Positions 22,867 to 62,159 of a stretch of DNA of 63,066 nt are shown piece by piece. This stretch comes from Octopus bimaculoides (Eukaryota), in assembly GCF_001194135.2 (NCBI RefSeq), contig NC_069006.1, positions 20,011,803-20,074,868 of the forward strand. The letters are read 5' to 3'. A program made the position numbers and the translations under genes. Every line of letters starts with the position of its first letter. Positions within the stretch are counted from its first letter, which is position 1. The notes beneath the pieces were generated by a model. The model was not told where the DNA came from and made no database searches. It saw nothing but the letters and a program-made list of their open reading frames with translations.

Positions 22867-24308
22867 CTATATATATGTAGAAGGTTGAAAAGGAACATGA
22901 CAGACAGAAAAACGGAAAATGTCCCTTGCATTTGAAAACTATGGAAATATTTTTAAAAAAACATTTCATTTAATTTTTCCACAATTTAATTGTTTTTCAT
23001 GCTTTACTCTTAAGTTGAAAAAGTCGCAAAGACTGAAACCGGTACTAAAATGTTCTTCACGATAAAATTATTTTATCATTTTCTACCTTGTCTTATTTTG
23101 CTTATACATCTATACATCTATNNNNNNNNNNNNNNNNNNNNNNNNNNNNNNNNNNNNNNNNNNNNNNNNNNNNNNNNNNNNNNNNNNNNNNNNNNNNNNN
23201 NNNNNNNNNNNNNNNNNNNNNNNNNNNNNNNNNNNNNNNNNNNNNNNNNNNNNNNNNNNNNNNNNNNNNNNNNNNNNNNNNNNNNNNNNNNNNNNNNNNN
23301 NNNNNNNNNNNNNNNNNNNNNNNNNNNNNNNNNNNNNNNNNNNNNNNNNNNNNNNNNNNNNNNNNNNNNNNNNNNNNNNNNNNNNNNNNNNNNNNNNNNN
23401 NNNNNNNNNNNNNNNNNNNNNNNNNNNNNNNNNNNNNNNNNNNNNNNNNNNNNNNNNNNNNNNNNNNNNNNNNNNNNNNNNNNNNNNNNNNNNNNNNNNN
23501 NNNNNNNNNNNNNNNNNNNNNNNNNNNNNNNNNNNNNNNNNNNNNNNNNNNNNNNNNNNNNNNNNNNNNNNNNNNNNNNNNNNNNNNNNNNNNNNNNNNN
23601 NNNNNNNNNNNNNNNNNNNNNNNNNNNNNNNNNNNNNNNNNNNNNNNNNNNNNNNNNNNNNNNNNNNNNNNNNNNNNNNNNNNNNNNNNNNNNNNNNNNN
23701 NNNNNNNNNNNNNNNNNNNNNNNNNNNNNNNNNNNNNNNNNNNNNNNNNNNNNNNNNNNNNNNNNNNNNNNNNNNNNNNNNNNNNNNNNNNNNNNNNNNN
23801 NNNNNNNNNNNNNNNNNNNNNNNNNNNNNNNNNNNNNNNNNNNNNATATATATATATATATATATATACATATATATACATATATATATGTGATGGGCTT
23901 TCAGCTGCCAGATCCACTCAAGGCATTGGTTGACCCTGGGCAATAGTGGAAGACACTTGCCTGTGGTGCCTGGCAGGGGAACTGAATCTGCAACCATGTA
24001 GTTTGGAAGCAAACTTCTTAGCACTCAGCCAGCCATTCCTGCATGTAAATATTTATGTTATTCCACATATTTTGTGTGTAATAACCGATTCCACAACTGC
24101 TGTTACTAATATAATAATATAATAATGTACATTCCTTTCTCTAAGAGTAGTTACTCGTTTCTTATAATTAATTTATCAATTGATCTCCACGATACTGTAT
24201 CACAGTGTTTGCTAGTGGAGCCTTTATGAGATTGCTCAACCTGCTAGAAATAGCAGCCAAAATCCCCTCATCACACCCTGCTGTTTTGTATAATATAGTC
24301 CTGCATAC

Positions 24309-41275: not shown

Positions 41276-41588
41276 ATGATAGCTGAAAAGGTGCCATGTG
41301 TTGGTCTACGCACATTCCTATACGGCTTGCCAGACTTCCGACGAGAAAATATGCTCCGTAAAGGCCGAGAGGTCCACAGAATCTATGTTGAAGTGCATAA
41401 AGGAACCACTTTCCTCGAAGATCAATTTACTCTGACAGAATTCGGAAGAACAGTCTTAGAAAGCGGAGGCATAAAGGCTGGCCGTGCAAAGAATGTGGAG
41501 CAGATAGTCGTCGCTCGAGAAACTCTGTATTGCAGTGGCTCTGCAACATGTCGACGAGTGTGTGGAGGATATTCAGAATGTACTCCAG
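41276..41588 (+). CDS. First coding exon of the N-terminal extension (MIAEKVPCVG...YCSGSATCRRVCGGYSECTP)
   Basis: ATG at 41276 with an in-frame TGA upstream at 41162-41164. CpG-rich codons. Donor CAG|GTAAGA at 41589, phase 1, matching the exon at 49376. Confidence 0.72.
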
Positions 41589-42809
41589 GTAAGAATTTTT
41601 TTTCTATATTCTTTCAAAATCCTTTAAATAAAATCTTAAATTGAAACAATATTACTATTTGTACAAATGTTGAACTTCAAGTTTTGCTGGTTGTTTACAT
41701 GATGGGGTTTTAGCTCTTTTATACACCTGTTTTATATTTTGGTTGCTATGTTACCAAGTTGACATTTTCTCTGGAAAATTTTTTCGGAAGTTTAGGTATG
41801 GGTGTGTGGTAAGAAGCTTGCTTCCAAACTGCATGGTTCCAGGTTCAGACTCACTGCAAGGCACCTTGGGCAAGTGTGTCTTCTACTATAGACTCAAGCT
41901 GACAAAAGCCTTATGAGTGGATTTAGTAGGTAGAAACTGAAAGACTCTTTTGCCAGACTGCTGTTACAGGGACGTAAAACACACCAACATTAGTTGTCAA
42001 GCAGTGGTTGGAGGATAAACACAGACACAAACACCCCCTCACACATACACATGGCGGGCTTCTTTCAGTAACCATCTACCAAATTCACTCACAAGGCTTT
42101 AGTAGCAGACACTTGCTCAAAGTGCTGAGCAGTGGGATTGAACCCAGAACCATGTGGTTGGCAAGCAAACTTCTTACCACACGACCACTTCTATGCCTTG
42201 TAGATTATTTACAAAAACAGGTTTAAATTTAGCATTGCTTTACTCATTCACTACCAAATTTCTGTTGAAATACACTGCCTCTGATCCAATTAATTTTGAA
42301 AAATAACAAAGAATTCAGTAAAATATCTTTAAGCCGGTGAATGCTGTGAGCTGGTAGAATCAGTAGCACATGGGAAAAAATGCTTAACAGCATTTTGTCC
42401 ATCTTAATGTTCTGAGTTCAAATTCCTCTCAGGGTTGATGAAATAAGTACCAGTTGAGCACTGGGGTCAGTGTCATTGACCAGCCCCTCCTTCCTCAAAA
42501 TATCAGGCCTTGTGCCTATAGCCGAAAGCGGTTATTAAGGTGATGCATGAACCCTAAATTGACTTGGAATTTTGATGGAAGGTTTTAATTTAAGTCCTTT
42601 TAAAACTGAAAGTTTCTATCATAGAACTAGAAACGGTCTCTGACAGATTGGTATCAAAAAGGTTAAGCATGCTAGACATCTCATACAGTTTACATATGTG
42701 CTTACATACATACATATATGTTTGTATGTATCTAATGCATGTATATATATATATATATATGTACTATGTGTGTGTGCATATATATGTGTGTATATATATA
42801 TATGTATGT

Positions 42810-42850
<41 letters not shown>

Positions 42851-45800
42851 TTGTTGTAGGATATCTTACTGGCAATCAAGTATATAGATAACACGAGGTT
42901 GGAGTTAAACCTAAGCTTAATTTATAATGTCTCTTTTGTTTAGTCGTTTGATATTCCACAGTTGTTGTCTAGAAATCCTGTCTGAGGTTATCTCTAATCT
43001 CTACCACACACAACAACTTTTGTGCAATTTTGTCATATTTACGGCTTCATGACCAAAGAAGTGGATGAGGAGTCTCTAAGAATTTTGAAAAATCATATAA
43101 AGAAAGAAAGAAAAAAAAAAATAAATAATTATCAGTTTCTTTTACTCCCAGTGGCAAGAGTATTTGTAGATTGCTGAACATAAAAAGAAGGCTAAGTACT
43201 TTGGATACTATCTCCTCTCAGAACAATTCCTCTCATTTCTTCAGTTTTCTCCCTCTAAGTTTTCTATTACCTTTATCTCTATTCTCAATATTTCTTATTG
43301 GCTACCCAGTCTTTCTGCTCTTTCTTTTGAATCCCACCATTACATATTTTAATCTTGAAGTTAATACTCAATACCTTTTAATTGTCAGCTCACCTGAATT
43401 CAGTTAATGTTTCTGATTCATCCCCCATTACACAACATCTTGTTTCATATCTCTTTTGAAAGTTGTCACTGATATTTGACCATCGGCTGGTTCCAGAAAA
43501 AGAACTATTCATTAAAAAACTATTACACTGTGTAACAACGATTTTTGTCCTTGGGTAGCAACTGTTATTTCCTATGTGCTGACCCTAGAAAGTATGAAAA
43601 ATGGTTAATATTTCCTTCAAACTTTGCTTTTGTTATGATATTTATTCAAAGCCCAAAGAATCCCTCTCAACACATGGCTATGATGCTCCCCCACTATTCA
43701 TGCTCGTCATCAGAGATGCACATATTGTCAGCCACTGAGGGACATGGTGAAGTGGTTAAAGTCAACATATGACAAGTAAATTTATGGTATTGAGCAAAAC
43801 ATTTTCTATAGTAGTATTTCAACTTCATCAACTCATCTCTGAATCTGTCTGAAATGTAATGGAAAATCAGTCAGTTTCAAAACATTGATGTCTAGGTCAG
43901 AAAAGCAAAGTTTGAAGGGAATAGCAGTCATTTCCTTTGATTTCTAGATAGAAGCAAATAGGAAATAATACTTACTGATCAAAGACAAATATATATATAT
44001 AAATTTTCTTACACAGTGTTATAATTAATATCTGTAAACAAATTAGCCATCTGCCTACATATCTGTTATGTATCTGATTGGGTGACTTGCCAGACCAATG
44101 CAGCTCTTCCATAAGTCTTCATATTCTCTACTTGATATCCAATGTCTTCTCCAAATTGATTGATAAATGTTCCTTTTGGTCTGCCAATACCTGTATGTCC
44201 ATGCATGGGTTTCCAGAGAAGGAGATTGCTGGATATTTCATCCTTGCTTCTCCAGTAGTATTCTGTATGTGTTCTTCTTTCTCAGATTACCAAGGTGATA
44301 GTAGGAAGACTGCCATATGGTTGCTGTTTTGTAGGCTGTGGCAGACGAGAAAGATTGAAAACTGACTAAAACCCAAACCAGACATTCATGTCTACATATC
44401 CCTCTTCAGCCATGATACATTCAGGGATTCTCGTGACTCCCTGTCACCATCTATTATGCATTTGAATTATGAACCTCAGTCATAGTGAATTGAGCTGATT
44501 AAACAACCATGGATGCTACACCTATGGATGTGTTACTGTTACTCTCATTAAAAAATGGTGTCTCTGTTTCTATTATTGCCTTTGTATTTGATCCTTGTGT
44601 GAATGGTAAAGAAAGAAAAAAAGAGAAAAAAAAACACTCACCCTGGCAGTCAAACATTTTATGTTCAGAGATATCGGTATGAATAGTTGAACATTCATGA
44701 ACTCTGCTGAACAATTTGTCCATCAGTTATGGCTAACATGTGACTCGCTAGATGTGTGTCACTGAAACTGTTTATAAAGTCTGCTGACTGTCAGAAGTAA
44801 TAATGACATGGAGACATAATATTTTATTGTGACGAGAATCTTTATTATACAGTTATTATTATCTCGAGGTTTAAATGGCTGGGTAGTACCTCCTACGGCA
44901 CCTGGGTATATTTTAACATCTATTTCTACTCTCTGTCAATTTAGCATTCCACCCCTACCCCCCACACTCTTTGTTTCTTTTGTAATTGTCTCTCCCTTTA
45001 ATTAAGAACTCTTTATTCCTTTTTGTTTTCTTAATATTAATAATGTTTGTGACCTTTTAAAGTATAGATGTGTTTTCTTCTTTCAGCTGTTAGCTCCCAT
45101 GTCAGCCAAATCTGTTTCTTTTTTACCTGCAGGCGAAAACTGCTGGAGTTTGATAGCAGTCATTAATTTTCTTTGCTAGGTTTTCTTTAAAGAACAGATA
45201 ACATATATTTAGCTTTCTGTATATACATTCGTAGGTACTTGTGGTGGGGGCCTAAATGCCTGTTGTAACAGCAATATTTTTTTTATGATGTGGCATAAAT
45301 TGAATTGTTCTACAGACTATTCAGGTCAGCTTCTCAACTACAAAACTGTGAATCATGCAAGCAAGTAGAGTAATGAGTCTTGTCTAAGAGTACGGTGCAA
45401 TGATTTGAATCTATATTCTAATCATTTTCAAGGGTCAGCATTAATTTCTGATATAGCAATTCTGTTCTTGTTTAAAGTTGTTATCATCACCACCGATTAA
45501 CCCTTTAGCATTTAATCCGGATACATCCAGCCCAAATATTCTACCTGTTTTATCTTGAAACTAACCAGATCCAATCTCTCACACCTACCTTACAATGTCA
45601 TTCTGACAATATGCAGGCACACCTTTGAAATCTTGAAGCTGTGTGATTAATTCAAAATAATGCGAATAAGTAAGGATTACACTTGGCCCTAATCAAAATT
45701 CTGAAGGGTTAAGGTGTGTTTTTCATGCTGGAATAGGTTGGACAGCTTGACAGGATCTGATGAGCTGCAGATTGTGTCAAACTCCAGTGGTCTATTGCAG

Positions 45801-48800
45801 GATTACTCATTTTTGCCAGTGGACTGGAGCGACATGAAATAAAAGTATTGTGCTCAAGAACACAATGTGTCACCCAGTCCAGGAATTGAAACCACAATCT
45901 TACGATCATGACTAAGCTATGCACCTCCACTCTCACTGGATGCCTTTTTATTTTTTCATGCCATCAGCATTTCTATTTTCTTGGTAGACATCTCCAAATT
46001 TTTGAATCGAGATAATACTAGATTAGCCTTGATCAGTAAAGTGTCCACACATGCAGTTCAGGAACTACTTCATCCTTTTACTGTAGAAATTAGATATGTC
46101 CACTGAAAATTTCATTAATCCTTAGCTACAGAAAATAGTTTTATATACCAATCTATCTTTTGTTGAGGAATGTCATGTCTGAAGCTATTTTTGCTGCGAT
46201 ACATCAAAAGTGACTTGCAGAAAAGAACAATTCTATTTGTTGACAGATATCTAACAGACTTCTCCTAAACTGTGAATCAAAATCACACTAGTTTGGCCTC
46301 AATCAGCAAAGTGTCCACTCATGCAGTTCAGAAACGACACAACTATTTTACAGTGGAAATCAGATATATTCACTCACAATTTCATTACTCTTAACTGTAG
46401 AAAGCAGTTTTATATACCAATCCATCTTTTGTTGAGGAATTGTTATGTTTGAAATTTTTTTTGTTGAGATATGTCAAATTTATTGAGGCAACATGACTGG
46501 TGGAAAATAGCAATTTTATTTTTTTGATGGAGGCACAAGTGGCCTAGTGGTTAGGGTAGCGGACTCACTGTTGTAGAATCGCGGTTTCAATTTCCAGACC
46601 GGGCGTTGTGAGTGTTTATTGAGTGAAAAGACCTACAACTCCACAAGGCTCTGGCAGGCTCTGGTGGCAAACCCTGCTGTAGTCTTTCACCACAACTTTC
46701 TCACTTTCTTCCTCTTTCTGTTGTACCTGTATTTCAAAGGGCCGGCCTTGTCACACTCTGTGTCACGCTGAATCTCCCCGAGAACTACGTTAAGGGTACA
46801 CATGTCTGTGGAGTGCTCAACCACTAGCATGTTAATGTTTATTTATTCAATTGTTTTGAATTAATCATACCCTATCGATGATGTGTTTGTTTAGTTTTAG
46901 AATGACATTGCAGGGTAGGCGTAAGAGGCTGAGTCTAGCTAGTTTGAACATAAAACAGCCAGAATATTTGAGCTGGATATGACGGGTTTAAGCACTAATG
47001 GTTTAAGGGATAAACTGTTGGTCAAACTTCTACAACTGCTAGACTGAAAGAAAATGGTGTGACTTTGATCTTTACCTTTGATTGGTTTATTGATGTGTAG
47101 TCATTTTACAGTTGTTTGTTGTTGAAGGACACTAATGAGAAGAAATTACTGATCCTGTTGAATTTTAATCTTGTAAATTTGTATAGAACTGCTTTAGGTG
47201 TGTGAGTGATGCTCTCTCTCACACACACACACTCACACATCCCAGCGGAGGTTGAAATGTGTAGTTTCCATTTGTAATTTGTCCTCTTATATCAAACCCT
47301 CATTTCTAACAAGTAGTAACAATAACACACCTTGAAGCTGTTGCTTCTACTCACTGTTACTTCTTCTTCCTATTTCATTACTTTTACAACATATGTTGGA
47401 CTATGGAGTTCAATCCTCTGCATTTTTTTACACTTTCACAACTTAGAATAACAAAAATACACCAAACATTCATGTATTCGGGACTGTTTTTGTTTCTCTT
47501 TTGCTTTTAACCTTTAGGATTTTCCGCTTCCAACAGCTTCTGGCAGTTCCCTTTTCATCAATCCACCATCTCATTTTATCACCTCATCATTATAAAGTTC
47601 AGTGATGTCTAGCTTTTGTCTTCTGCATATAAAGTTTATTTTTTTATGCATTTAGCAATTACCATTCCCTTTTTCTGTTTTCCTTCTTTCATTCTCAGAA
47701 CTCCAACTCGTTAAGATCATGTTGTTTGCTTCCATCCATCAATTAAACTAGAATATTATGTTGAAAATCTCTAACATTTAACTTAATGCCATATTAGATG
47801 CTATGGTGTCCACCTTGCCTTGTTTATCTCTGTGTTAAGGTCTCTCTCTCTGTCAGCAGCTAATCAGATTAACTACAAAAGGGCCTTGTCTACTACAGCA
47901 GTTAATCTGATTAGTCCAAGACTGAAGTGGAAGACTACTGAAAATGGTGGGTTAAACTAAATTTATGTACTTAATCAGGTTAAACATTTTTCTTTTTTAA
48001 GGAAAAGCTAGTGCTGTTTTGTCAATAATTAAAGTGGAATGAGAGGCGACAGTAGCAGAGTTTTTCTGTTTTTGAAGGGTGATCAGAATGCCTGTGATCC
48101 ATATTGATAAAATTGTTCCTGTCTAAATATGTGTGAATTAAATACAGTTGTTCTTCAAATAATAAATATGTTCTGCTATGATGAAGAGGAGCTGTGTTGG
48201 TCGAGGGCCCATAAGTATAAAATGTTCTAACAGGGAACTTGTAAATATGTCAGCAATCAAGAGTGGCAATTCAAGTAAGAATAGTTGACTTGGAAACGAA
48301 GCATGTGCAATGATATAACTATGAAGATTGAGTTCCTAAAACCAAGGTGCCACATAAAAAGTGTTGGTGTGGGTGCTGGTGCCATTTTGAAAGGATTAGT
48401 GCTGGTGCCACTTAAAAAGCACTGCTGATAGTACTGCATAAAAAGCACCCAGTACACTCTGTGGAGTGGTTGCCATCAGGAAGGGCATCCAGCTGTCGAA
48501 GCCAAGCCAAAACAGACTATGGAACCTGGTGTGGCCCTTGGCCTTACCAGTTCCTGTCAAGCCATCCAACCTATGCTAGCATGGAAAACTGATGCTAGAT
48601 GATGACGATGATGAATTAGTAACTGTAAGGAATAGATGAAGTTTAACTATAAGAACAAGTTTCTTATTCTTGCAATGATTTTTTAGTGTTCAAATTTTAA
48701 CTGATATTATTATAATGGTTCTGGATTTCTGTTATTTAAAAAAAAATTGAATAAAATAATACTTTAAAAATTTCCTAAACTTTTGATTTTATTCATTTAA

Positions 48801-51800
48801 CTATATTCATCATCATCGTCGTCATCATTTTAACATCCGCCTTCCATGCTGGCATGGGTTGGATGGTTTGACAAGAGCTGTTCAATAACCAATAGAGGAC
48901 CTGCAATTGACTAAATCTAACTTCTGTTATTCTCTTTTACCCTTTAGCATATAAACCAGCCACATCCTGCCAAAATATTCTACCTGTTTTACATTCTAAC
49001 TGGCCAGATCTGGCCTTTCACACCTAGCCTACCATTTCATTCTAAAATTAGCAAAGACATTATCCAAATGTTGAAGCTTCAAGATAATGCATGATTAATT
49101 CATAATAACAATATTAATAATTTGACAATAATCTGAAGGCAAAAAGGTTAAGCTTGAATCTTATTTATAATTTCTGTTTTTTTTTTTTTATATATATTTA
49201 GAAAGTATGTTATTAAAAAATATATTTGAAATAATTATTTTGTTCTTGTTTGTCATAATCATAAACTGCTGAAGAAATATAAACCTTTTCTATTGATATT
49301 ACAATCTTATCTTGGTTGCTATTTAGATTTCTTATTTTTCTTTATTTTCTTTTTCTTTTTTTTTTTCTTTTGCAGACTGCTCAAAGACGAAAGTGCGGGG
49401 TCACAAATGCAATTACAGAGTCAAGATGACTATGCGCTTGGGACATGTAAACTCTTGGTTTGTAGAGGTAACCGGTGACCACAGTGGAGCCTTTTTCCGT
49501 TATGAGAACATGCTTCTGCAAAAACCTTCTGCCCGTTCTAGTCAAAAGAAAATGCGAGCCAGCTTAACTAATCCATCATCATTCCCTCTTATTAGCCACC
49601 TCACACCGTCTCAGGAACAGAACTATTTTTTAATGAATGCTACAATTAAATCAGAACCACCTGATACAACCGTGGAAGAATTACCCAGCCCTGTGTTCCA
49701 GTCAAACCCTCTAGAATTTCATAACTCTACCATTGACAAGAAACCTGGTTCACAGGCTGACATGTCGTACACGTGTATGGCAGGCAATACTCAGGTGGTA
49801 CCAGATGAGCCCAGTATGGCAGTTGCTCAATCAAATTATACTGCTGTCATGGAAGAGATGTGGAATGATGCCAATATTGACTCTAATGAAAATGATAATG
49901 ATGACGAGAAGGTATTAATACTCCACCTTTGCATGTGTACAGTGTGTACCGACTATACTTTAGATACAGTTAGTCTTAGTGCCAGATCCTACTGTTTCAA
50001 CCAGTCTTTACCAAGCTCTCTATCTCTACATATTAGTTAGTGTCTGTTCCTTCAATAACTGTGCTGTGGTTTTTCTTTGGTTTTAGTATGCGTTTTACAT
50101 AGTTTGTGTGTGTGTATATGCATGTACTGCACACATTTGCATGGCTAAATTACAAGAATTATTTTCTTTTCCGTTTCTTTTTTTTACTTTGTTAACAAAT
50201 TTATTTAAACTTGCTTTTTTTTTTGTCCTTTTTCTTTTCTTTTTTCTTTCTTTTTTTTTTTTTCTTTTTTTTTTTGAAACTCCAGCTGTGTGAAATCTTG
50301 CTTCTTCATGTTTCAAGTAATCTCTTCTTTTCCATCAGTTTGTCCCTGCAGAATTTTAGTACTACTGAGAATTGTTGCTAAGTAGTAATAATTTTGTAAT
50401 ATATTTCAGGTCAATGATATTTTAACAGGGAAAAGCAGTAACTATTAACACCTATTTATTGATATATATTTATCAAAGACTCGTTTAATGAACTTTTGGT
50501 TCTCTTGACAAAAATTTCAATTATTGTCACCATCTGCTGATATTAATTAAAACTTATATCATCATCATCTTCATTTAACATCGTTTTCTATGCTGACATG
50601 GGTTGGATGGTTTGACTGGGGGCTGGCAAGCCAGTAGGCTGCGTCAGGCTCCAGTCTGGTCTGGCAACGTTTGTACAGCTGGATGCCATTCCTAACGCCA
50701 ACCACTCCAAGAGTGTAGTGGATGCTTTTTATGTGCCACCAGCATGGGAGCCAGTCAGGCAGATATGTATGTGTAAATATCGAAGAATGAGAATGAATTC
50801 TCAACAGCACATTGGTGGATAAAGGTTCTTTATTCATGTATTAAGACTACCATTGGTTTCATGTAAAGGAACACCTCAACAAAGTGAAAGGACAAACATA
50901 AGAAAATAGCACTGAACACAATTGATACAAATTAAATAAATAATTATAGTAACAGCTTGACTTGACTCCAGATGACTCAAAGCTTCATAGGCTCACAGGA
51001 CAAGCCTAACTTGTCAGGTGTCGAGAGAAGACTCTGGATACCTGATGAAATAGGTTCAGCCTATGAGCCTATGAAGCTGTGAGTCATGGAGCTGAGTCAA
51101 ATGGCTATTAATAAACATATATGTGCACACACATGCATGTATGTAAAACAAAATTTAATTATTACTGAGATATAATTTCCATTTACAGTTTTAATTCAGG
51201 TAAACTTTATCAAAATTATTTGAAGTGAATACACTGTAAAGTATTACAAAATGAAGAGAACTCCTCTATGTTACCTTCTGTGATGTTTATATTTCAATGA
51301 ACTTTGGTATGTTTAAAGATTTGTTTCTTAATCATTTCAGAAAGGTGTGATTTTTAAATTAGAAAATTACTATTTTTAAATCTCACAACGAGAGATATTC
51401 AGCAACAGTACTTTGGAGTAAAGATTTTTGCCAACATAACACGGCAGTCCTGGTTTAGGACTAATGTTGCTGTAATTTCACTATCAAACTTTCCCCCTAT
51501 TGTCTAGCCCCAGGTCAGCCCTGATTGAGCACCCTCGTAATTAAAGACATTCCAATCATGGCCATACCATCTTTTTGTATATCAAAAACTATGTTAGCTA
51601 ATGAATCCTTACTTTAAGATAGTGGTGGTTGTTGATTTGGTTCCTGTTCTAAAAGATTGGAGTTATATTAAGAGTGAGCTCCCTTGTCGGTTCATTTTAT
51701 ATTGATGTAGTCCTGGAATGTGTGCTTCTGTCCATATATTTGTGTAAATAATAATTTATTAGCTTTAAGCTTATATGCATTCACCATGTATTGGCTATAG

Positions 51801-54800
51801 AAAATAGTCTAATGTTGGGGCATAGAAACCCTTGACAAGGCAAAAAAAATGGGTGCATGAGAAAACTATGAAATTATAGTTCTTAAATCTAGCACGAAGA
51901 AATCAGTGGATAAGTTGGTGTTATCTGGCAGCACACTTATCATGAAAATAGGAGGTGTAGGTTCAGTTCCCATGCAGTAGTGTAACTGGGGGAGGGGAAA
52001 GGGGGGAGCACTCAATTTATACCAGCTGAGTGGACTGGAGCAGTGTGAAATGAAGTGTCTTGCTCAGGAACACAACGCATCTCCCATTCCGGTTCAGGAA
52101 TCAAAAACCACAATCTTACAATCACATGTCCAACATCCTAACCACCAAGCCATGCTCTCCCATTTATTGCTACAAAGACTCATAAGAAAGAAATTATACC
52201 TGTATGTGTTAAATACATCTCCAAAAAGTGCTTCCTTACCAGCTTATCTGATGTGATTTACAGTTTTTTATTAATAACATACTAAACTGCTTGTTATTCT
52301 CATTTGCGTTTCCATTTACAGCAATGCCATGGTAATTAGAACCGCGTCATTTTCTGTGTTTCAGGGCAAATTGTTTCATAGTCTTCTTGAATGTTTTTCT
52401 CTGAGATGTGCGGAAATATTGATTTTTTTCCAAGAACACAGTCAATGCAGATGTGACGGTTTTGTTTTGTGTCGTTTATTATTACTAACATGATTTTTAT
52501 GTTTTCTTTCTTTTTTTTTTTGTTTCGCTTTCTGTTTTCGTAGGATTTGGTTAGACGGGTACGACAGTTAGAAGCACATGTTTCTCAACTGCGCAACATA
52601 ATCCTGAAGAATGATAAGAAAGAAGATAAGAAGAAAGATCGAAAAGGAAAAGTTTTTGATTTTTCTAAGTGAGTCTGCAATTTTTGCATCTTATAATGTG
52701 GAATATAATAACCCCCCACCCCCCAAAAAAACCCTTTTGGATTAACTACCATGCTTAGGTCCATCATGGGCCCAAGGGACTGAGATAACAACACTCCCTC
52801 TTGAACTAGATGCCAGACCATTTCAGGGTTAACTTCCCAACCATTGCTGGAACTCATTTGTAGCTGAGTGGACTGGTGCATATAAAGTGAAGTGTTTTGC
52901 TTAAGAACATAATGTACCGACCAGTCCAGGAACCAAAACTATGGCCTTACAAGCTTTCACTATCATGAGGGAGTTAAAAAATATTTTGCCATTGTTTTGC
53001 AGTGAACTATTTTTCACTAGCAGAACAGTTACTTCTACTTCCAGTAGTCAGATATCTACCATTGACAAGGCAAAAGAAGGTTGCTGGTAGTCCTGGCAAT
53101 GGAAATGGTAGTGATTGTCTCCCCCTAGCAATGTAAGTGAAGTGCTTATGTGCACCACAAAACCATATGAAAGGTTCTCTCATAGTATCTATCGCAGTAT
53201 TGTGTGTTCTAAAACAGCATCCACTTTTAAGTGGTGATAAATTCTATATTTTGGTATTAATACTACTTCTGCTGCTTTAATTAGCTAAATATTTTTCTCA
53301 TCTTCACATTAAGAATATATGATATATCCAATGTGTGCTATAGTAGCTATATACTGGAGAAGAATATGTCTTAGACAATTTGTAAGACATTTATATTAAG
53401 GAATTTGTCCCAATTAATATATTAAATAAAACCAAGAAGGTTGGTTGTTAGATTCAGGAAATATATTTAAACTCACTTAATCCTTCTGATAGCAACCCAA
53501 TTGAGACAGGCCCTGGTTCTATGATACAAACTTCCCGTTTTAAAGTGATGTAAATTAAAATCTTCCTTCAGAATTATACATTTCATTTATTTTTAATTTT
53601 CATTTTCAGGTACAATACAAGACACATTGCTCTGAAAGTAGCCTATCTTGGTTGGGACTACCATGGCTTTGCTGTTCAAGAAGACAATGAAAAAACTATT
53701 GAGGCAGCATTATTTGAAGCATTGATTAAAACAAAACTAGTTGATTCACGGTAAGTGTCTAGAATAGAATTGAAAAAAAAAAAAAGCTGGTAATTATCTT
53801 GGGTGATTTATTAATGTGGAAAATTTCAGATGCACCATATTGGCGAATGACGTCAATTAGGTGCTGGTGCGGTTGTGTGGTTAAGAAGCTTGCTTCCCAA
53901 CCACATGGTCATGGGTTCAGTCCCACTTGGGCACACTCATTTCTCATTCTCTAGTTTGGAGAATGTGTCAACTTTTTTTCCATCATTTCCACAATTATTT
54001 CCTTCAGATATTTCTTTTGGTTCTACAAGGGTTGGCTGAAAAGTTCATAGGCTGACCAAGATACTCTCATGAAATGTAACTAAATGAGCTTTATTTTGGA
54101 ACATAAACCACCCCTTGCTGTCCACACACTTCTTCCATTGGTATTTGCAGTACTGGATGCCATTGGTGAAGAAGCTTTCGTCCTGTCATCAACAGCAGAT
54201 ATGACATCATCATCATCACTATGATACTGGTTCCCAACCAAGTGTGTTTCTCATGCTGGGAAGCAGAATATCTTTTAGTGCCATTTCCATTAAATACATT
54301 GTCAGCTGTGGATTGGTTGATAATAAGCATGTTATTAGGTGCTGCTGTGGGTGTGTGGTTAAGAAGTGTGTTTCTCAACCACATGGTTTTCAGGTTCAGT
54401 CCCACAGCTTATCACCTTGTGTACTTGGCTGAATGTAATCACATCGTTTTGAATTAATCATGAATTATCTCATGACTTTCAGATTTCAGTGTTGTGATTG
54501 TTTATTTTTTTAGAATGTCATTGTAGAGTAGGTGCGAGAGGCCAGATCTGGCCTGTTAGACCATAAAGCAGGAATATTATTTGGACCAGATATAACTGAT
54601 TTGAACCAGATATGGATTAAATACTAGAATTTCTTGAGACATGTCTTAACATTTGCTGTTATTTAACAAGTCTTTTTCTTTATTTCCAGGGAGAATTCCA
54701 ACTATCATCGTTGTGGAAGAACTGACAAAGGTGTCAGTGCTTTTTGTCAGGTTTGTAACAAAGTCTCTAATTACTTTCCTCTTACATTAGTTCAAGTTCA

Positions 54801-57800
54801 AAGTTTAGTTCCCTTCTTAGGTGGCTGGCTAAGCATGCCAGGCAAAACGCTTAGCAGTGTATCATTTATATTCTGAGTTCAAATTCCACTGAGGTCAACT
54901 TTGCATTTCATCCTTTCAGGGTCAATAAAATAAGTATCAGTTGAACGCTGGGGTCGGTGTAATTGACTAGAGACCTCTTTCCCAAAATTGCTGGCCTTAT
55001 GCCAAAACTTGAAATCAATATTAAGACAATACAAAATGGCAAGCTGGTTGAATTGTCAGCACGCTAGACAAAATGCTTAGTGGCATTCCATCAGTTTTCA
55101 CGCCGCCTTTTTTTTATATTGAATTTTCTTTCTTAAAATACTTTCAGGTTATTTCCTTGGATCTTCGAACATCATTGTTAGAAGGGCCAGGTGTAAAAGT
55201 TCGTCAGAATGGAACTGCTCATGAAAGGCCAGGTATGAACAAAATTCAGAATCTAATTTTCAAAGTACCTTTTCACTAAATTAATTTTTTTTTCCCCATT
55301 CTTGATTTTTTTTTTTTTTTTTATACAAAATTTTTTTTAAATTCTATTTTGCATCTTCAGGTGACAACATGACTGAAATTAAGTATGTTCATATTCTCAA
55401 CAAAGTCCTTCCTCCAGAAATTAGGGTATTAGCTTGGGCTCCAGTAGATCCTTCCTTTAGTGCAAGGTAATGACACCCTGGCTTTTTTTATCTTCTTTTT
55501 TATTTTTCCCTTACATCCAAATTTACATCCAACAATTTTGTTACTTGGTTTTTACACTTTTATTTTTTTTAATGTTTTAGGTTTAATTGTAAAAGGAGAA
55601 ATTATAAATATTTTTTCCCTGTTGGAAACCTGGATGTTCAGGTACGTAATCGTTTGTTATTTCATAGATTATCTAATCCCTAAGTATAAAATTTGATCGC
55701 TATAAACAAATGATCTGCACAGGTTGATCAGCAAGAAATTGTGGAACCCCTATCTGTCTTATTATGACTGGGGAATCCCCCATCTTGTGTGAATATGAGA
55801 CTGTTATGGACTCTTGAATTATTTGAAACCCAGGGTCTCATATTGAGGGAGTGAACTTGTTAACCATTTGGCCAGCTGTGTTCACTATATTATCACAACA
55901 AAGACTATGTTGGTTTATCAACTTGTCTTGGTTGACTTGACAAAGTAAATATGAGATGGGAATATTGTGTGTTATATTATGGATGATAATTTGGCATATA
56001 TCGAGACAGAGTCATTTTATAGAGCCAAGTAAGGCCTACATCATTGGTTTTCAACTGGGGTCCTCATGGCCCTTAGAAATCCACATAAGATTTTGCTGTT
56101 AAAATTTACATGTGATAAATTAGTTTTCTAAAATATGGAATTTGCGAGTTGTATATTGTTGGACAAGCTTTTCTTTGGCACCGGATATGTTGTATCATTG
56201 CTGTATTATTCTACAATATAAAACATATTTCAAAAATTTTTTTCATAAAATTCCTAATAATATCTAACTATAAAAATGTTCTAGGACTTTTTTTAAACAT
56301 TGAATGGCTATGGGGTCGAGAAGAGTGAAATAGGAACCAAAGGGCTCCATAGGCACAAAAATGGTCGAGAACCACCGGTCTGCCTGTTGAGATAAAAACA
56401 TTGCGTAGAATGTGGTAAATATATTTGAAAGGCTTTATTGTTTCTGTTTAACAGTTGATGGCTGAAGCAAGTCAAAAGTTAGTTGGAGAGCATGATTTCC
56501 GAAACTTCTGTAAATTGGATGTAGCCAATGGGGTTGTGAGCTGTAAAAGGAAAATTCTTTCTGTTGACATTATGGTTGTAGAACAAGGGTAAGTGACTTC
56601 ATTTTCACTTGGTTCTTGAAACAATCCCTTTATTTTTCCCCCATTTAACCCTTTATTTGAGCCAGATATGGCCATTTAACCGGCCATATCTGGCTCAGAT
56701 CTTTTACCTGATTCATGTTCAAAGTGGCCAGATTGGGCCTCTCACACCTATCCTACAATATCATTCTAAAAATAGACAATCACATCATCAACATATTTGA
56801 GGCTATGAGATATTGCTTGAATGGAAAATAGGTCAATTTCAAAACATTGATGTCCAGGTCACAAAAGCAAAGTTTGAAGGGAATAGTAGTCACTTCCTTT
56901 GATTTCTGGATAGAAGCAAATAGGACAAAATACAGCAAAAATGTATAAATTTTGTGACAGTGTAATCAAAGATGAGTTAAGTAGAGTGTGTTGTCTGTTG
57001 AACTGAAAAAATGGAATGATTGAAACATGTTAATATTTAACAGGAAAATATAAACTAAAAGTGACTTTAAAAATCAGGTTTGTCCTTCATGTGTTGTCTC
57101 TTAGATTTTTCCCTTTTTCCAGTTAAAGGAAATATTACCTTAAACACTTTTGCCATTGGAAAATTCTCTGTAAAAAATTTCTGTAAAAAATTTTGTTTTA
57201 AATGTCTTCATGTTTTTTTACTGTTTTGACATTGAATAAAGACTTGACTATTTAATGCTTTTATAAAACCTTTTGTTATTTCGAAAATGCTGATATAATA
57301 CGTTTTATCAGTGTCCATGTGGTGAATTTGTCTTGCGGCAAATTTTCCTATACGGCAAAACTTCTTATAGTGACTATTCCGGGCAGTTATCATGAAAAAA
57401 AGACAAAATGTCTTTTAATCTTTGCTAACTTCCATGTAATTAGTTGGGACATAAATAATTTCAATTATCTACTACAACAGTTGTTTTATTTTCCTTGTAG
57501 ACCAAATGGCTATGAAATTTGCGAGTTGTGTATTGTTGGACAAGCTTTTCTTTGGCACCAAATACGTTGTATCATTGCTGTATTATTTCTCATTGGAGAA
57601 GGCAAAGAATCTCCAGAGGTAATCAATTTATTCATGAATTCTTAATTATCCATTTAGTTTGATGAAATGACTCATATTGAAATTCTGGAAAATAAAAACA
57701 GAAGCATGTGGCTTAGTGGTTAGGGTGTTGGCTTCATGGTCATAGGATTGTGGTTTCAATTCCTGGACCGGAATTTGGTCAGCCCAAAGCTGTAGGTGCC

Positions 57801-60800
57801 ACGCAGTGGTACTGAACCCATAACCATGTGGCTGGGAAGCAAACTCTTTACCACACAGCCACATTTACACCTATGTATGTTTAAATTTTTTTTTTTTTCC
57901 ATAATTTTCTACTCTAAATGTACAAACAAGACAATGTAATATAATTATTAATGATAATTAATTGATTAACCTTTGTTTCTTTGAAGATTATAGAGGAACT
58001 GCTAAACATTGAAAAAACACCACGGAGACCCCAATACAACATGGCTTCCGGTAAGCTTGAACAGCATATTGATTGATTTAACATTATTGATAATTACCCT
58101 TTCCATTAAGTTCTCTTTTCTTCTACTTCTCTCTTTCTCTCTTCTTCCTTCTCACTCTCTCTTCCTTCCTCCCCCCCTCTCACCTTCCATTTCTCTCTCT
58201 TCCTACCCTCTCCATCCTCTCTCCCCCTTCTGTCCTCCCTCCCTTTTTCTCTCCTCCTTCTCTCTCACCTCTCTTCCTCTCTTTCTGTCCTTCCTCCCCC
58301 TCTCTCACCTTCCCTTTTCCTCCCTCCCTCTCTCCTCCCTCACCCCACAATAAATTGTACTGTGGTTGTTTGGATGACTCCACATGTCTCATTTGTTAAT
58401 TAATGTCTCTCCTGTAAATGTCATATTCTGTGTTTGTGGTTCCAACATTCCATTTGACATCTCTCATTCAGTTCCAACAGAACAATCCAATAACCATCAT
58501 CATCAGCATCATCTGCATCACCACTATTGCACGACCCATTGTTTTATGCCCAGAATAAGTAATATTTTGTTTCATGGAAATATAGATTTGTATTCAATAA
58601 AAAAAAAGTAAAAACAATATTGAAATAAAAGAAACATTTGATACATCATCATCATTTTTGTACATCCGTCCATTTTCCATGCTGGCATGAGTTGAACAGA
58701 TTGACAGGAGCTGCACCAGATTCCATAGTGTGTTTTGGTTTGGTTTCTACAGTTGGATGCTCTTCCTAATGCCAACCACTTTACAGGAAATACTGGGAGC
58801 ATTTTAAATACCACCATCACCAGTGCTTTTCATGTGGCACCATCACCAGTGCTTTTCATGTGGCACCACCACCAGTGCTTTTCATGTGGCACCATCACCA
58901 GTGCTTTTCATGTGGCACCATCACCAGTGCTTTTTACATGGCACCATCACTAGTGCTTTTTATGTGGTACCATCACCAGTGCTTTTTACATGGCACCATC
59001 ACTAGTGCTTTTTATGTGGTACCATCACCAGTGCTTTTCATGTGGTACCTTAGTTTTAGAGTATCGTGGTTTTACGACATGATGATGATGATGATATATA
59101 CCAGTAAGAGTTCATTCCACACTTGTAAAAACTTTTGATGTTCAGTTGGAATATTTAAATTTGTATAAATAAATGCCTTGAGACCATTAATGACCACCTG
59201 TTATTCTGTAGTGCTATTGTGCATTTCATGTATCTCTTTGTCATTTTCAGAACTTCCTTTGGTGCTGTTTGATTGCCATTTCTCAGAAGAAGATCTGGAC
59301 TGGGTCATTGAAGCTGGTCAGTTACATTCCCTCCCACTTTTTTCTCTTTTTAAATTAAGTTTAGTCATTCGACTGCAGCCGTGCTGGAGCACTACATTTG
59401 AGTGTTTTATGTTTTAGTTGATCATATCAACCACAGTATTTATTTTAATCTGATATTACTTTTATAATGCCAGTTAAGACACATGCATGCACACACACAC
59501 ACACACACACATGATGGCAAATGAGGGTTATTATACTAGCAGAGATATCTAGCATTGCTCGAGATTAAAATCGTACAGTCTGTATATATAGATATTACTT
59601 GCCCAAGGTGCTGTGCAGTAGATTCAAATTCAGAAGGACACGGTGGCAAAGCGAACTCTTTTCTAACATTGACATGTTTACACTGCTATATGTGTTTGTA
59701 ATTTTGTTGTAACTGCTTTTGTTGATGTCATATTTGAAAACTTTATCTTCAATTCGTTTGTAGATTGTCATGAAGAAAATATCCGACATTTCCAGAAGGT
59801 GTGGGCCCAACATGCAATCAAGTAAGTTTCTTTATCAATTTTAATACTGTCATTAGCCCTTTCGTTACTGTATTTATTTTGAGATGCTCCGTGTTTCTTT
59901 CAATTACTTTAAATATAAAAAAGAATTTAGTAAAATAACTTAGTTATCATTCAGCTGGTGTCAGGAACATAAATTGTGGCTAAGGTTTGGTGAAAGATTT
60001 TAATTCAAAACTTATGGAAACAAGACATTTGTACTCAGAGCCAGAGGTGGTTTCAGCCGGGTTGGTAACGAAAGGGTTAAAGTGATTGTAGTTTGTGTTT
60101 GAATTAATCCTTTTGTTGCCATATTTCTGTTCCAATATGATGCCTTTTGCTTCAGTTAATTTTTAAAATATTGAAGCATTTTATGAAACGCCCCTGCCAT
60201 TATTATTCTGAAGTTTGAAACACAAATCAGCTTTGAATTTTGATGGAATGAACTTTGTATCAGGAACTTTGTATCTCTAAAATAGGAAATTTGTATACAA
60301 ACCAAGATTGGTCAGAAGCAGTTTAGTATCAAAAAGGTTAAGATTCTTTGTCCATTAGCCTTTTTTTTTTTTTTTTTTTTCAGAATTAATTTTTAGTGGC
60401 GTTAGGAAGGGCATCCAGCTGTAGAAACTCTGCCAAATTTAGATTGGAGCCTGGTGTTGCCATCCAGTTTCACCAGTCCTCAGTCAAATCGTCCAACCCA
60501 TGCTAGCATGGAAAGCGGACGTTAAACGATGATGATGATGATGATGATTACATATAGAAAGTTAACCCTTTAGCATTCAGATTATTCTGTTAAATGTAGT
60601 GGTTATTTATTCATACTGTTTAAAAATTAATCATATCTTATCTCATAGCTTTGAAGATTTGATGATGTGGTTCTATATTTTTAGAATGACATTGAAGGAT
60701 AGGTGTCAGAGACCAGATCTGGCTGGTCTGAACATAAAGCAAATAGAATATTTGGGCCGGAGATAGCTGGTTTAAATGATAAAGGGTTAAGTCTAATTCA

Positions 60801-62159
60801 GATAGAATATTACAAAGGAAACCGTTTTTGTGAGTTTATTATTTCAATTTTGGTTAAATTTAACCTTTTGATGAAGGTATACTTGTACTTTGTGTGTTAT
60901 CTAATTGTTTTTCATTCTTTCCTTTGTAGAGCAGCTATGGTTAAACAAATGCTTGAAGGACTCAACAGCCACAAAGTTGAAACCGGTATGTATTAAATTA
61001 TTGAATCTAGACATAAACTTGAAATCTTGCTTCCATTATATCTAACTGCAGTGAGCAGGCAGAGTTGTTAGCATGTCAGACAAAATGCTTAGTAGTATTT
61101 CTTCTAGCTCTTTACATTCTAGTTTTAAATTCCACTGAGGTCAACTTCACCTAGCATTCCTTTCAAGGTTGATAAAATTAGTACAGCTGAGGGCTGGGAT
61201 TGATGCAATATGCTCAAACATATTGTCTCAAAATTAGAAAGAATTATTCTTTTACTTTCTTCAGTCATTTGACTGCAGCCATGCTGGAGCACTACCTTTT
61301 AGTCAAAGAAATATACCCCAGAACTTATTCTTTGTAAACTTATATAATTATATAATTTAGCTTGGTAAAGTGCCTTTATGTATCACAAAATTAATTTCTT
61401 TCATATTAAATTCTCTGTTTCTCTATTTTGACATGATTATTCATTTGCTTATTGTTTTTGTTTTATTCTTGTCTTAGATACTGATATAGCTCCATGGTGT
61501 GAGCTGAGTGAGCCAATACTTGCCCAAAGTGAATGGTTAACACCTGGCTGTAAACCAAGACATTACAAATCTCTGTTGCAAAGACAAACATGTGGTAAGT
61601 TTCACAAATTTTAAATTGAAAACATATGGCCTTCTGTACTCTGGCAGTTTGTTGTACTTGATAAGACACGTCAAGCTAAGTAAAGTCACTGTCTTCCACA
61701 CCTACAGACTTGTTCTTTCAGGTGCCGGTGCCACTTAAAAATCACCCATGTTGGTGCTACATTAACACACCTGTGTTGGTGTTGTGTTAACACACCCATG
61801 CCTATATTTTGTTAACAAACCTACGCCTGTGCTGCGTTAACATATCTGTACTTGTGCTGCAGTGCCGGTGTTGCATTAACACACCTGTGCCAGTGCTGTG
61901 TTAACACACCTGTGCCAGTGCTGCGTTAACACACCTGTGCCAGTGCTGCGTTAACACACCTGTCCTGGTACTGTGTTAACACACCCATGCTGGTGCTGCG
62001 TTAAAAGATTTTTTCTTTTTTTTTTTTTTTCATTTTGCCAATCTCTTTCATGTTGTTGTTGTTATTACAGAGAGCCTGGAATCAAAAATTGAACATTATT
62101 CAAAGAAAAGGAAATTCGTTGAAAATCAAGACTCCTGGTCAGGATTTGCTGGTGAATGA
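41276..62159 (+). CDS. PUS3: Whole spliced model, 16 coding exons, predicted 709 aa: 283-aa N-terminal extension plus 426-aa tRNA pseudouridine(38/39) synthase
   Basis: Manual exon chaining. Every intron is GT..AG and phases match at every junction. The join from 49911 to 52544 is inferred from phase compatibility, not from transcripts. Confidence 0.7.
45501..45708. mobile_element. Same piggyBac-like MITE family, opposite orientation
   Basis: TTAA|CCCTTTAGC ... GAAGGG|TTAA. Interior matches the reverse complement of 60566-60786. Confidence 0.7.
46005..46520. repeat. Old 270-bp tandem duplication
   Basis: Anchor GTGTCCACxCATGCAGTTCAG at 46041 and 46311. Confidence 0.8.
46529..46835 (+). mobile_element. 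tRNA-derived SINE (family D) with Pol III boxes
   Basis: A box TGGCCTAGTGG at 46540-46550 and B-box-like GGTTTCAATTTCC at 46583-46595. A similar head occurs at about 57700-57770. Confidence 0.65.
48940..49147. mobile_element. piggyBac-like MITE copy (same orientation as 45501)
   Basis: CCCTTTAGCAT start and AAAGG|TTAA end. Confidence 0.6.
49376..49911 (+). CDS. Second coding exon of the extension (DCSKTKVRGHKCNYRVKMTMRLGHVNSWFVEVTGDH...IKSEP...DSNENDNDDEK)
   Basis: Long poly-T tract plus TGCAG acceptor, 536 nt open, phase 1 in. Donor AAG|GTATTA is phase 0, matching PUS3 exon 52544. Confidence 0.75.
52544..52668 (+). CDS. PUS3: PUS3 exon (DLVRRVRQLEAHVSQLRN...KVFDFS), N-terminal coiled coil
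   Basis: Acceptor TTCGTAG and donor GTGAGT. Matches the PUS3-family LLKRVRELE...AFDFS segment. Confidence 0.92.
53610..53750 (+). CDS. PUS3: PUS3 exon (YNTRHIALKVAYLGWDYHGFAVQEDNEKTIEAALFEALIKTKLVDS)
   Basis: TruA/PUS3 motif I (AYxGWxYxGF). Acceptor TTTCAG and donor GTAAGT. Confidence 0.96.
54690..54750 (+). CDS. PUS3: PUS3 exon with the catalytic Asp (ENSNYHRCGRTDKGVSAFCQ)
   Basis: Canonical RTDxGVSA motif, flanked by AG and GT. Confidence 0.97.
55148..55232 (+). CDS. PUS3: PUS3 exon (VISLDLRTSLLEGPGVKVRQNGTAHERP)
   Basis: VISLDLR motif. AG/GT sites, phase 0 to 1. Confidence 0.93.
55361..55466 (+). CDS. PUS3: PUS3 exon (DNMTEIKYVHILNKVLPPEIRVLAWAPVDPSFSA)
   Basis: LNxxLPxxIR...FSARF motif. 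AG/GT sites. Confidence 0.95.
55581..55641 (+). CDS. PUS3: PUS3 exon (FNCKRRNYKYFFPVGNLDVQ)
   Basis: RxYxYFFP motif. AG/GT sites. Confidence 0.93.
56042..56377. mobile_element. Older copy of the same hAT-type MITE (opposite orientation) carrying a PUS3 exon fragment
   Basis: Decayed TIRs CATTGGTTTTCAAC / GGTCGAGAACCACCG. The interior is colinear with the reverse complement of 27595-27844 apart from the insert at 56134-56210. Confidence 0.75.
56455..56588 (+). CDS. PUS3: PUS3 exon (LMAEASQKLVGEHDFRNFCKLDVANGVVSCKRKILSVDIMVVEQ)
   Basis: GxHDFRNxCKxDVANG motif. Donor GTAAGT. Confidence 0.96.
57501..57618 (+). CDS. PUS3: PUS3 exon (PNGYEICELCIVGQAFLWHQIRCIIAVLFLIGEGKESPE)
   Basis: GQAFLxHQxRC motif. 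AG/GT sites. Confidence 0.96.
57987..58050 (+). CDS. PUS3: PUS3 exon (IIEELLNIEKTPRRPQYNMAS)
   Basis: ELLNIEKxPxxPQY motif. AAG acceptor and GTAAGC donor. Confidence 0.93.
58815..59048. repeat. Minisatellite, 9 x 26 bp (CATCACCAGTGCTTTTCATGTGGCAC)
   Basis: Direct count. Units 5-6 are repeated as units 7-8. Confidence 0.92.
59251..59316 (+). CDS. PUS3: PUS3 exon (ELPLVLFDCHFSEEDLDWVIEA)
   Basis: PLVLxDC motif. AG/GT sites. Confidence 0.93.
59764..59821 (+). CDS. PUS3: PUS3 exon (DCHEENIRHFQKVWAQHAIK)
   Basis: HxQxxWAxHAxK motif. Donor GTAAGT. Confidence 0.92.
59857..60076. mobile_element. piggyBac-like MITE
   Basis: Perfect 12-bp TIR CCCTTTCGTTAC. Flanks TTAG / TTAA. Confidence 0.75.
60397..60548 (+). 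mobile_element. Young SINE family C 3' part with (GAT)n tail
   Basis: 88 of 89 nt identical to 20866-20954. Older copies at about 33255-33458, 48345-48615, 50565-50760(-) and 58645-58800(-). Confidence 0.8.
60566..60786. mobile_element. piggyBac-like MITE of an abundant family
   Basis: TTAA|CCCTTTAGCATT ... AATGATAAAGGG|TTAA. Confidence 0.75.
60930..60985 (+). CDS. PUS3: PUS3 exon (AAMVKQMLEGLNSHKVET)
   Basis: MLxGL motif. Phases 2 to 1 fit the neighbouring exons. Confidence 0.9.
61478..61594 (+). CDS. PUS3: PUS3 exon (TDIAPWCELSEPILAQSEWLTPGCKPRHYKSLLQRQTC)
   Basis: YKxLxxRxxC motif. Donor GTAAGT. Confidence 0.9.
61745..62003. repeat. Minisatellite, about 25-bp unit (GTGCTGCGTTAACACACCTGTGCCA)
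   Basis: About 10 progressively diverged units. Confidence 0.8.
62071..62159 (+). CDS. PUS3: PUS3 last coding exon (ESLESKIEHYSKKRKFVENQDSWSGFAGE*)
   Basis: LESxIxH motif. TGA at 62157-62159. KKRK resembles a nuclear localisation signal. Confidence 0.88.

Follow-up and report, generated by a model that had tools for sequence, protein, structure and literature searches.

The locus considered here raises the question of whether PUS3, a conserved housekeeping tRNA modifier whose mutations cause neurodevelopmental disease in humans, is translated in Octopus bimaculoides as the C-terminal half of a much longer protein that begins with a cysteine- and histidine-rich domain of zinc-binding type. 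The stretch of DNA that was analysed, hereafter the window, comprises 63,066 nt of the O. bimaculoides genome, and all octopus coordinates below are positions within it. A first-pass annotation of the window had proposed that two upstream exons encoding such a domain are spliced in frame to the first recognisable exon of PUS3. Taken as a whole, our analysis makes it probable that this is one fused gene, created by an old addition in molluscs, with a module that likely binds nucleic acid and targets the enzyme; as a separate matter, a single fusion gene and not two genes is, judging from sequence comparisons, very likely. The predicted product combines a basic domain of ~ 140 residues, a disordered linker of ~ 110 residues, a short acidic tail and a complete PUS3 with a predicted intact catalytic site, and the same architecture can be read from the sequences of cephalopods, bivalves and heterobranch gastropods.

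The coding sequence of the octopus extension was traced through three consecutive exons (41276-41588, 49376-49911 and 52544-52668), the first of which starts at the first ATG downstream of an in-frame stop codon. When joined, these exons yield an uninterrupted 324-residue reading frame with GT/AG sites and phases of 0, 1 and 0, and the proposed stop-free chain was thereby reproduced. Exon 3, whose product ('DLVRRVRQLEAHVSQLRNIILK...KVFDFSK') corresponds to the N-terminal helical region of PUS3, contains no Met codon and is immediately preceded by an in-frame TAG (52541-52543); because of both features it is unable to initiate translation alone, in line with the earlier remark that the first recognisable PUS3 exon has no ATG of its own. 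The complete assembled model has 16 exons and a stop-free coding sequence of 2130 nt, corresponding to 709 residues and closed by a TGA at 62157-62159.

Sequence comparisons and transcript-level data from three classes of mollusc supported the in-frame fusion of PUS3 to the Cys/His-rich domain, which had been the central claim of the first-pass annotation. Fused proteins of 946 residues were found in Biomphalaria glabrata (XP_055864792.1 from LOC106070325, 'uncharacterized protein', and KAK6965918.1, 'tRNA pseudouridine synthase 3') and in B. pfeifferi (KAK0061564.1), and the Biomphalaria RefSeq accessions in this cluster (four of four) encode the identical 946-residue long form. As in octopus, the zinc-type domain (residues 40-180), a long linker, the EK/DL junction (a slash marks the splice position; '...ELDK' followed by 'DLVNRVQQLEAHV' in these proteins) and PUS3 (PF01416 at residues 718-830) follow each other in the same order, whereas the linker is ~ 330 residues longer than that of octopus and 39 residues precede the domain. 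Identity between the octopus product and the Biomphalaria protein P0171 was 66% in the zinc-type domain and 66% across PUS3.

Among bivalves, a Mya arenaria model (WAR14767.1, 'PUS3-like') contains the exon 1 half of the domain together with the PUS3 N-terminus and skips the second half of the domain. A Logan contig (L001; 2259 nt, transcript-type, bivalve-like, with a reading frame open at its 5' end) encodes a protein, P0028, in which a basic 'GRAKARKRFHPSQV' (linker motif GRAKxRKRF) and an acidic 'SMYTYVWDGDMNDS...EEK' are directly followed by 'DLITRVRQLE' and the full PUS3. Linker and acidic tail are joined to PUS3 in P0028 at EK/DL, the same junction as in octopus; its basic motif was also found at the end of a Pinctada zinc-domain gene model, and the octopus tail 'SNYTAVMEEMWNDANIDSNENDNDDEK' is homologous both to the acidic segment of P0028 and to 'SYTYLWDGD' in Pinctada PUS3. 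In Pinctada imbricata (L002; VSWD01000011.1, 18031-19249) a gap of 164 bp separates the end of this model, FSP39_005642, from the PUS3 model that follows in the same orientation, FSP39_003526, and the PUS3 frame is open 5' of the annotated Met, where it reads 'ESHVRRELREFVARRELDR' in agreement with P0028. In Elysia chlorotica (L005; RQTK01001070.1, 12297-12800) the 'partial' model EGW08_019820 and the 818-residue PUS3 model that follows it share the frame of one open exon. The gene is thus wrongly split into two annotations in no fewer than two published genomes of molluscs (Pinctada and Elysia), and fused proteins are already present in public databases, unnamed or called simply PUS3, with the extension undescribed. 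No paper describing a PUS3 extension or fusion was found in literature searches on PUS3 with zinc finger, mollusc or octopus, or on pseudouridine synthase with WRKY-GCM1.

Exon 1 is 60-70% identical to its mollusc orthologues, all of which are interrupted at the same 'C.PG' intron. Two introns are common to the mollusc classes, namely this in-domain one (C.PG/C, phase 1) and the one before 'DL..RV'. The former, intron 1 of octopus, is also present in Pinctada, Elysia and the matching sequences L003 and L004, and it is removed in two spliced forms, Biomphalaria P0171 and an intronless contig (L013; ENA ERZ27229295 k141_31912, 2419 nt) in which the zinc-type domain and PUS3 are both present. The latter, which precedes exon 3 at EK/DL, occupies the same position in Pinctada and Elysia, and its position and phase are common to all three classes.

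Two cephalopod genomic contigs, L006 (80% amino acid identity) and L010 (93%), matched the window across exon 2 only. In both of them similarity begins at the acceptor AG and stops a few bases past the GT donor, exon 2 keeps its two splice sites, and the sole indel is 6 nt long and in frame, while the read-through translation past 49911 is frame-shifted between close octopod relatives. The ratio of nonsynonymous to synonymous substitution rates (Ka/Ks) against L006 was 0.086 for exon 2 overall, being 0.008 in the zinc-type part (1 nonsynonymous and 15 synonymous changes), 0.11 in the linker and 0.13 in the acidic tail. Purifying selection on the Cys/His part, which the first-pass annotation had named as a test of its proposal, was therefore evident. 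The layout of the gene is given in Table 1.

Table 1 Features of the fused PUS3 gene of O. bimaculoides (positions within the window)
Feature	Position	Strand	Description
Coding exon 1	41276..41588	+	313 nt, residues 1-104; start codon; donor GTAAGA
Exon 1, content	41276..41588	+	N-terminal alpha/beta lobe; C86 (41531-41533), C92, C96, C102 (41579-41581)
Intron 1	41589..49375	+	7.8 kb, phase 1, GT...AG; splits the zinc-type domain
Exon 2	49376..49911	+	536 nt; acceptor AG, donor GTATTA; phase 1 in, phase 0 out
Exon 2, first part	49376..49497	+	Residues 105-145; C106 (49378-49380), H114 (49402-49404), C116 (49408-49410), two beta strands, H140 (49480-49482)
Exon 2, middle (S/T/P/Q/N-rich linker)	49498..49827	+	Residues 146-255; basic patch KKMR; IKSE (49645-49656)
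Exon 2, end (acidic tail)	49828..49911	+	Residues 256-283, 'SNYTAVMEEMWNDANIDSNENDNDDEK'; closes at the conserved EK/DL splice junction
Exon 3 (first recognisable PUS3 exon)	52544..52668	+	125 nt; acceptor AG, donor GTGAGT; helical 'DLVRRVRQLEAHVSQLRNIILK' plus basic stretch
PUS3 exons 4-10	53610-53750, 54690-54750, 55148-55232, 55361-55466, 55581-55641, 56455-56588, 57501-57618	+	AG/GT borders
PUS3 exons 11-16	57987-58050, 59251-59316, 59764-59821, 60930-60985, 61478-61594, 62071-62159	+	AG/GT borders
Dead copy of exon 10 core	56134..56210	+	77 nt in intron 8; 94% identical to 57511-57587

The dead copy of the exon 10 core is not flanked by splice signals and does not enter the gene product. 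Upstream of the gene, no convincing coding frame was detected in 1-41275 of the window, a targeted search of 11-41 kb returning repeats and gaps only. This part of the draft assembly is rich in microsatellites and contains 12 runs of N, including 451-864, 9637-10175, 23122-23845, 32291-33024 and 36363-37347.

The enzyme half spans residues 284-709 and is 66-67% identical to PUS3 of other invertebrates. PF01416 (PseudoU_synth_1) was matched at residues 481-592 (score 107.5 bits, Pfam cut-off 23.3; E = 6e-31), and the catalytic RTDKG motif is intact ('HRCGRTDKGVSAF' / 'GRTDKGVS', encoded in exon 5); the catalytic residue of human PUS3 is D118 (PMC11258540). The solved human PUS3 structures 9enb and 8okd were matched at E = 5e-132, PUS1 and TruA at 1e-15 to 1e-19, and the best database matches were named PUS3. 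Residues 284-709 are, by this homology, the orthologue of PUS3, with predicted activity as a tRNA pseudouridine(38/39) synthase. In vertebrates and yeast the N-terminus of PUS3 is short, disordered and dispensable. Octopus exon 3 aligns from residue 14 of human PUS3, which leaves ~ 13 residues before the start of the alignment and bears out the earlier statement on the shortness of the vertebrate N-terminus. Octopus PUS3 is like PUS3/Deg1 of the TruA family in its PF01416 domain, RTDKG motif and orthologous enzyme core, and unlike other PUS3 in carrying a 283-residue N-terminal extension with a folded domain, where the human protein has those ~ 13 residues and most animal PUS3 are 430-480 residues long in total.

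The human enzyme forms a homodimer, which a C-terminal helix holds together; residues 1-51 are disordered and a 1-57 deletion is active (PMC11258540). Because the human N-terminus is disordered and can be deleted with activity retained, extending it by a module on a long linker should leave catalysis undisturbed, and, given a flexible, dispensable N-terminus and a homodimeric enzyme, the fused protein would be a normal PUS3 dimer with two tethered zinc modules. A long N-terminal extension was also seen in PUS3 of the oribatid mite Medioppia subpectinata (P0116, 616 residues). It is unrelated to that of octopus and has a precomputed PF28538 match and weak SWIM and zf-C3H2C3 matches at residues 135-147, and N-terminal modules may have been added to PUS3 on more than one occasion.

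The domain at the N-terminus of the octopus protein (residues 5-142) is basic, with an isoelectric point (pI) of 9.4. Eight Cys/His residues (C86, C92, C96, C102, C106, H114, C116 and H140) are invariant across 14 full-length members, from octopus to amphioxus. The pattern in the first-pass annotation stood as written for C86, C92, C96, C102, C106, C116 and H140, and had missed H114, which is equally invariant. The candidate ligand set, conserved across the family alignment, is a multiple of four and enough for two zinc ions, and the domain is predicted on these grounds to bind zinc. Basic and aromatic positions are also invariant in the family, with Arg/Lys on predicted strands in RKGRE, ARETL and RVK. 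AlphaFold2, supplied with the family alignment, returned one confident domain with a predicted local distance difference test (pLDDT) of 86.4 and a predicted template modelling score of 0.78, most of exon 1 exceeding a pLDDT of 90. The order of elements is beta-alpha-alpha-beta-beta-beta-alpha, after which come one long strand (IVVARETLY), the cluster of Cys residues and a last pair of strands ending in G-D-H; strands were placed at residues 75-83, 116-122 and 128-134, followed by the G-D-H.

The first-pass annotation had further suggested a fold of the WRKY/GCM1/FAR1 type, which the searches did not demonstrate. No Pfam domain was matched in the zinc region of any member (ten members searched at E up to 10; the exon chain, the full model and 20 relatives returned PF01416 only), and sequence searches of the PDB with two family profiles produced nothing meaningful. 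Profile alignment with hhalign gave a probability of 0.4% against WRKY, aligning the last strand only, and of 0.9% against GCM1, aligning only the C-x-G-x3-C-x-R-x-C stretch, while shuffle-controlled Smith-Waterman comparison to WRKY and GCM1 gave z ≤ 2.2. A likeness to GCM1 noted by eye (C-x-G-x3-C-x-R-x-C, R-G-H and G-[DE]-H) was dropped as statistically unsupported. Foldseek searches with two AlphaFold2 models against the PDB, and with one against BFVD, found nothing better than E of about 1. The top PDB match of both models was a WRKY DNA-binding domain (WRKY18; E = 1.1-1.4, probability ≤ 0.3, template modelling score 0.28-0.57), and WRKY domains made up five of the ten top matches of the first model; the GCM structure 1odh was not among the Foldseek matches.

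The octopus domain resembles the zinc fingers of the WRKY-GCM1 superfamily (WRKY, GCM, FLYWCH and the N-terminal fingers of FAR1/MULE proteins, MULE standing for Mutator-like element) in its predicted beta-rich fold, in its candidate Cys/His ligands and in having a strand followed by G-x-H (WFVEVTGDH in octopus versus VVTTYEGKHNH). It differs from WRKY in its eight candidate ligands instead of four, in an extra alpha/beta lobe of ~ 80 residues and in the C-x5-C-x3-C-x5-C-x3-C cluster, and it shows no significant sequence or profile similarity to the superfamily, the Foldseek matches lying at E of about 1. Membership of the WRKY-GCM1 superfamily is a lead, not a result, and the recruitment to chromatin that the first-pass annotation envisaged is likewise a lead.

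Between the zinc-type domain and PUS3, Ser, Thr, Pro, Gln and Asn account for 43% of the linker (residues 146-255). A SUMO consensus (psi-K-x-E), IKSE, and an acidic end had been noticed in the first reading of the sequence, and both were located, at residues 195-198 and 256-283 (pI 4.05), respectively. IKSE also occurs in L006 and L010, and the consensus recurs in other linkers as IKEE (Biomphalaria), IKKE (Pinctada), IKRE (Mya) and VKQE (L003). This recurrence is compatible with a candidate site for SUMO-dependent nuclear regulation.

The family to which the zinc-type domain belongs is small, a sensitive search of 1.84 billion representatives yielding 43 proteins at E ≤ 0.001. The PUS3-linked type of the domain ('MLRKGREVHKIYV...') was found in molluscs only, in octopods, bivalves (Pinctada, Mya and several further contigs) and heterobranch gastropods (Elysia and Biomphalaria); the 'KGTMVPC...' group of matches is from bivalves (Mya arenaria). 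The fusion was not found outside molluscs among the family members from this search, and the cephalopod context implied by the first-pass annotation proved too narrow, since the fusion is mollusc-wide. Divergent stand-alone paralogues are encoded at three Octopus loci (LOC115219172 / LOC106869118, LOC115226066 and LOC106879828; proteins P0176, P0178 and P0182), and others occur in Mytilus (P0169) and Pomacea (P0195). In amphioxus (Branchiostoma P0180/P0225) the domain lies at the C-terminus of a protein of 1909-2275 residues. Other architectures include two tandem copies (P0172) and, in some paralogues including those of octopus, a C-terminal coiled coil; by analogy, the octopus paralogues look like dimeric DNA-binding nuclear factors.

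One metagenomic protein of 460 residues (P0226; library-wide E = 2e-4) is a divergent member of the family in which the domain is followed by sub-threshold matches to MULE PF10551 (E = 0.014) and to the ZSWIM1-3 RNaseH-like PF21056 (E = 0.0013) and by a C-x2-H motif, 'CWFH' (residues 327-381 and about 430-450). Mutator-like elements carry DNA-binding domains of WRKY-GCM1 type on the N-terminal side of their transposase core. Although a single metagenomic case, P0226 suggests a link between the zinc-domain family and Mutator-like transposases.

The favoured explanation is that the fusion arose early in molluscs, when the first coding exon of PUS3 was probably joined to an upstream gene for a stand-alone protein of the zinc-domain family. 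The zinc module would bring the enzyme to particular sites or substrates, or hold it there, and its ligand would be either DNA, for chromatin tethering at, for example, tRNA genes, or RNA, as accessory substrate binding.

Several observations weigh against this explanation. The octopus junction 49911/52544 rests on homology and conservation, and no octopus PUS3 protein was among the matches of the protein searches. The two open frames of Pinctada share 50 nt and are shifted by 1 nt relative to each other, and contig L013 is untidily assembled (it has a frameshift, lacks nearly all of the linker and contains part of PUS3 in inverted orientation at 707-820), being either a mis-assembly or an unusual isoform. 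PUS3 models of Patella, Lottia and Mactra are 434-451 residues long, with their own short first exon and no zinc domain; in these molluscs the fusion is either absent (lost) or an alternative isoform, and in octopus too a short isoform may arise from an internal promoter. Binding of zinc and of nucleic acid is deduced for the module, no significant relative with a known function having emerged from the sequence and structure searches. We nevertheless regard it as very improbable that the locus contains two independent neighbours, a zinc-domain gene ending near 50037 and a PUS3 with an undetected first exon, chained in frame by chance or read-through. Without splicing at the 49911 donor, the frame does stay open for ~ 42 more codons until that stop, two genes are listed in the Pinctada and Elysia annotations, and a number of PUS3 models from molluscs are short and lack the fusion. 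However, coding conservation ends exactly at the GT donor and the read-through part is frame-shifted in close octopod relatives; the acidic tail has homologous counterparts both in P0028, where this sequence is spliced to PUS3, and in the annotated N-terminus of Pinctada PUS3; the EK/DL intron agrees in position and phase in three classes; Biomphalaria (RefSeq and GenBank) and Mya models are fused; and the gap is 164 bp in Pinctada and nil in Elysia, therefore leaving no room for a terminator and a promoter. A long fusion made alongside a short PUS3, the latter from an internal promoter, an alternative first exon or an ATG of exon 2, is possible, though less likely than not, and is compatible with the favoured explanation; housekeeping tRNA modification would then be independent of the zinc module, and the fusion would have a specialised role. 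The own first exons of the short Patella, Lottia and Mactra models speak for two products, as do the annotated Met of Pinctada PUS3, which lies within the exon 2 equivalent, several in-frame ATGs in octopus exon 2 and an intron 2 of 2.6 kb that could conceal a small first exon. No candidate alternative first exon was validated, no search of 49912-52543 for one having been made; all four Biomphalaria accessions encode the long form, and the Ka/Ks of 0.11 in the linker suggests that the connection itself matters.

Returning to the module of the fused protein, we consider nucleic acid its most likely ligand because the domain is basic, its paralogues carry coiled coils and one relative is linked to a transposase, and on balance this function is favoured. 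Its most specific form, in which a sequence-specific DNA-binding module derived from a Mutator-like transposase tethers the dimeric PUS3 to chromatin (for example at tRNA genes or other loci of RNA polymerase III or II), is unlikely. That the module is instead an RNA-binding accessory domain altering the choice of tRNA or other RNA substrates, much like the Pus10 zinc/THUMP head or the Dus3 CCCH fingers, is a tentative option, as compatible with the data as the DNA-binding one. It fits the basic charge and the lack of significant similarity to any DNA-binding fold, and fusion to RNA-binding domains is common among RNA-modifying enzymes. Against it, stand-alone paralogues combine the domain with a coiled coil at the C-terminus in the manner of dimeric transcription factors, one member occupies the position of the DNA-binding head of a MULE transposase, and WRKY domains recur, albeit non-significantly, as top structural matches. 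Finally, a domain for protein interaction or regulation (localisation, SUMO-dependent regulation or complex assembly) with no nucleic-acid ligand would account for the conserved psi-K-x-E motif and acidic tail and for the lack of detectable homology to nucleic-acid binders, but is quite unlikely in view of the strong positive charge of the domain, its invariant Arg/Lys on the predicted strands and the transposase-linked relative.

An extra, strongly constrained zinc module on the N-terminus of PUS3 has been retained across the mollusc phylum, although some models are short, and the family that supplied it is absent from Pfam, lacks a relative of solved structure and is covered by no literature that we could find. 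The fusion offers a handle both on how RNA-modifying enzymes acquire targeting modules and on the role of this orphan zinc-domain family. If the module binds DNA, this would be a rare RNA-modification enzyme physically coupled to chromatin; if it tethers PUS3 there, pseudouridine 38/39 could be made co-transcriptionally, or new RNA targets modified, in molluscs, by a DNA-guided RNA-modifying enzyme retained for > 500 million years.

Accessory binding domains are a familiar feature of RNA modifiers, examples being the zinc/THUMP head of Pus10, the PUA domain of Cbf5/TruB, the S4 domain of RluA/RsuA and the CCCH fingers of Dus3. The mollusc protein is well supported as a further fusion of this kind, in which a pseudouridine synthase carries a new accessory domain, specific to the lineage and drawn from an orphan zinc-domain family. 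Like these systems, it couples a catalytic RNA-modification core to an extra, often zinc-containing, binding domain; unlike them, its module belongs to another family, is attached through a linker that is long and disordered rather than packed against the core, and is restricted to molluscs.

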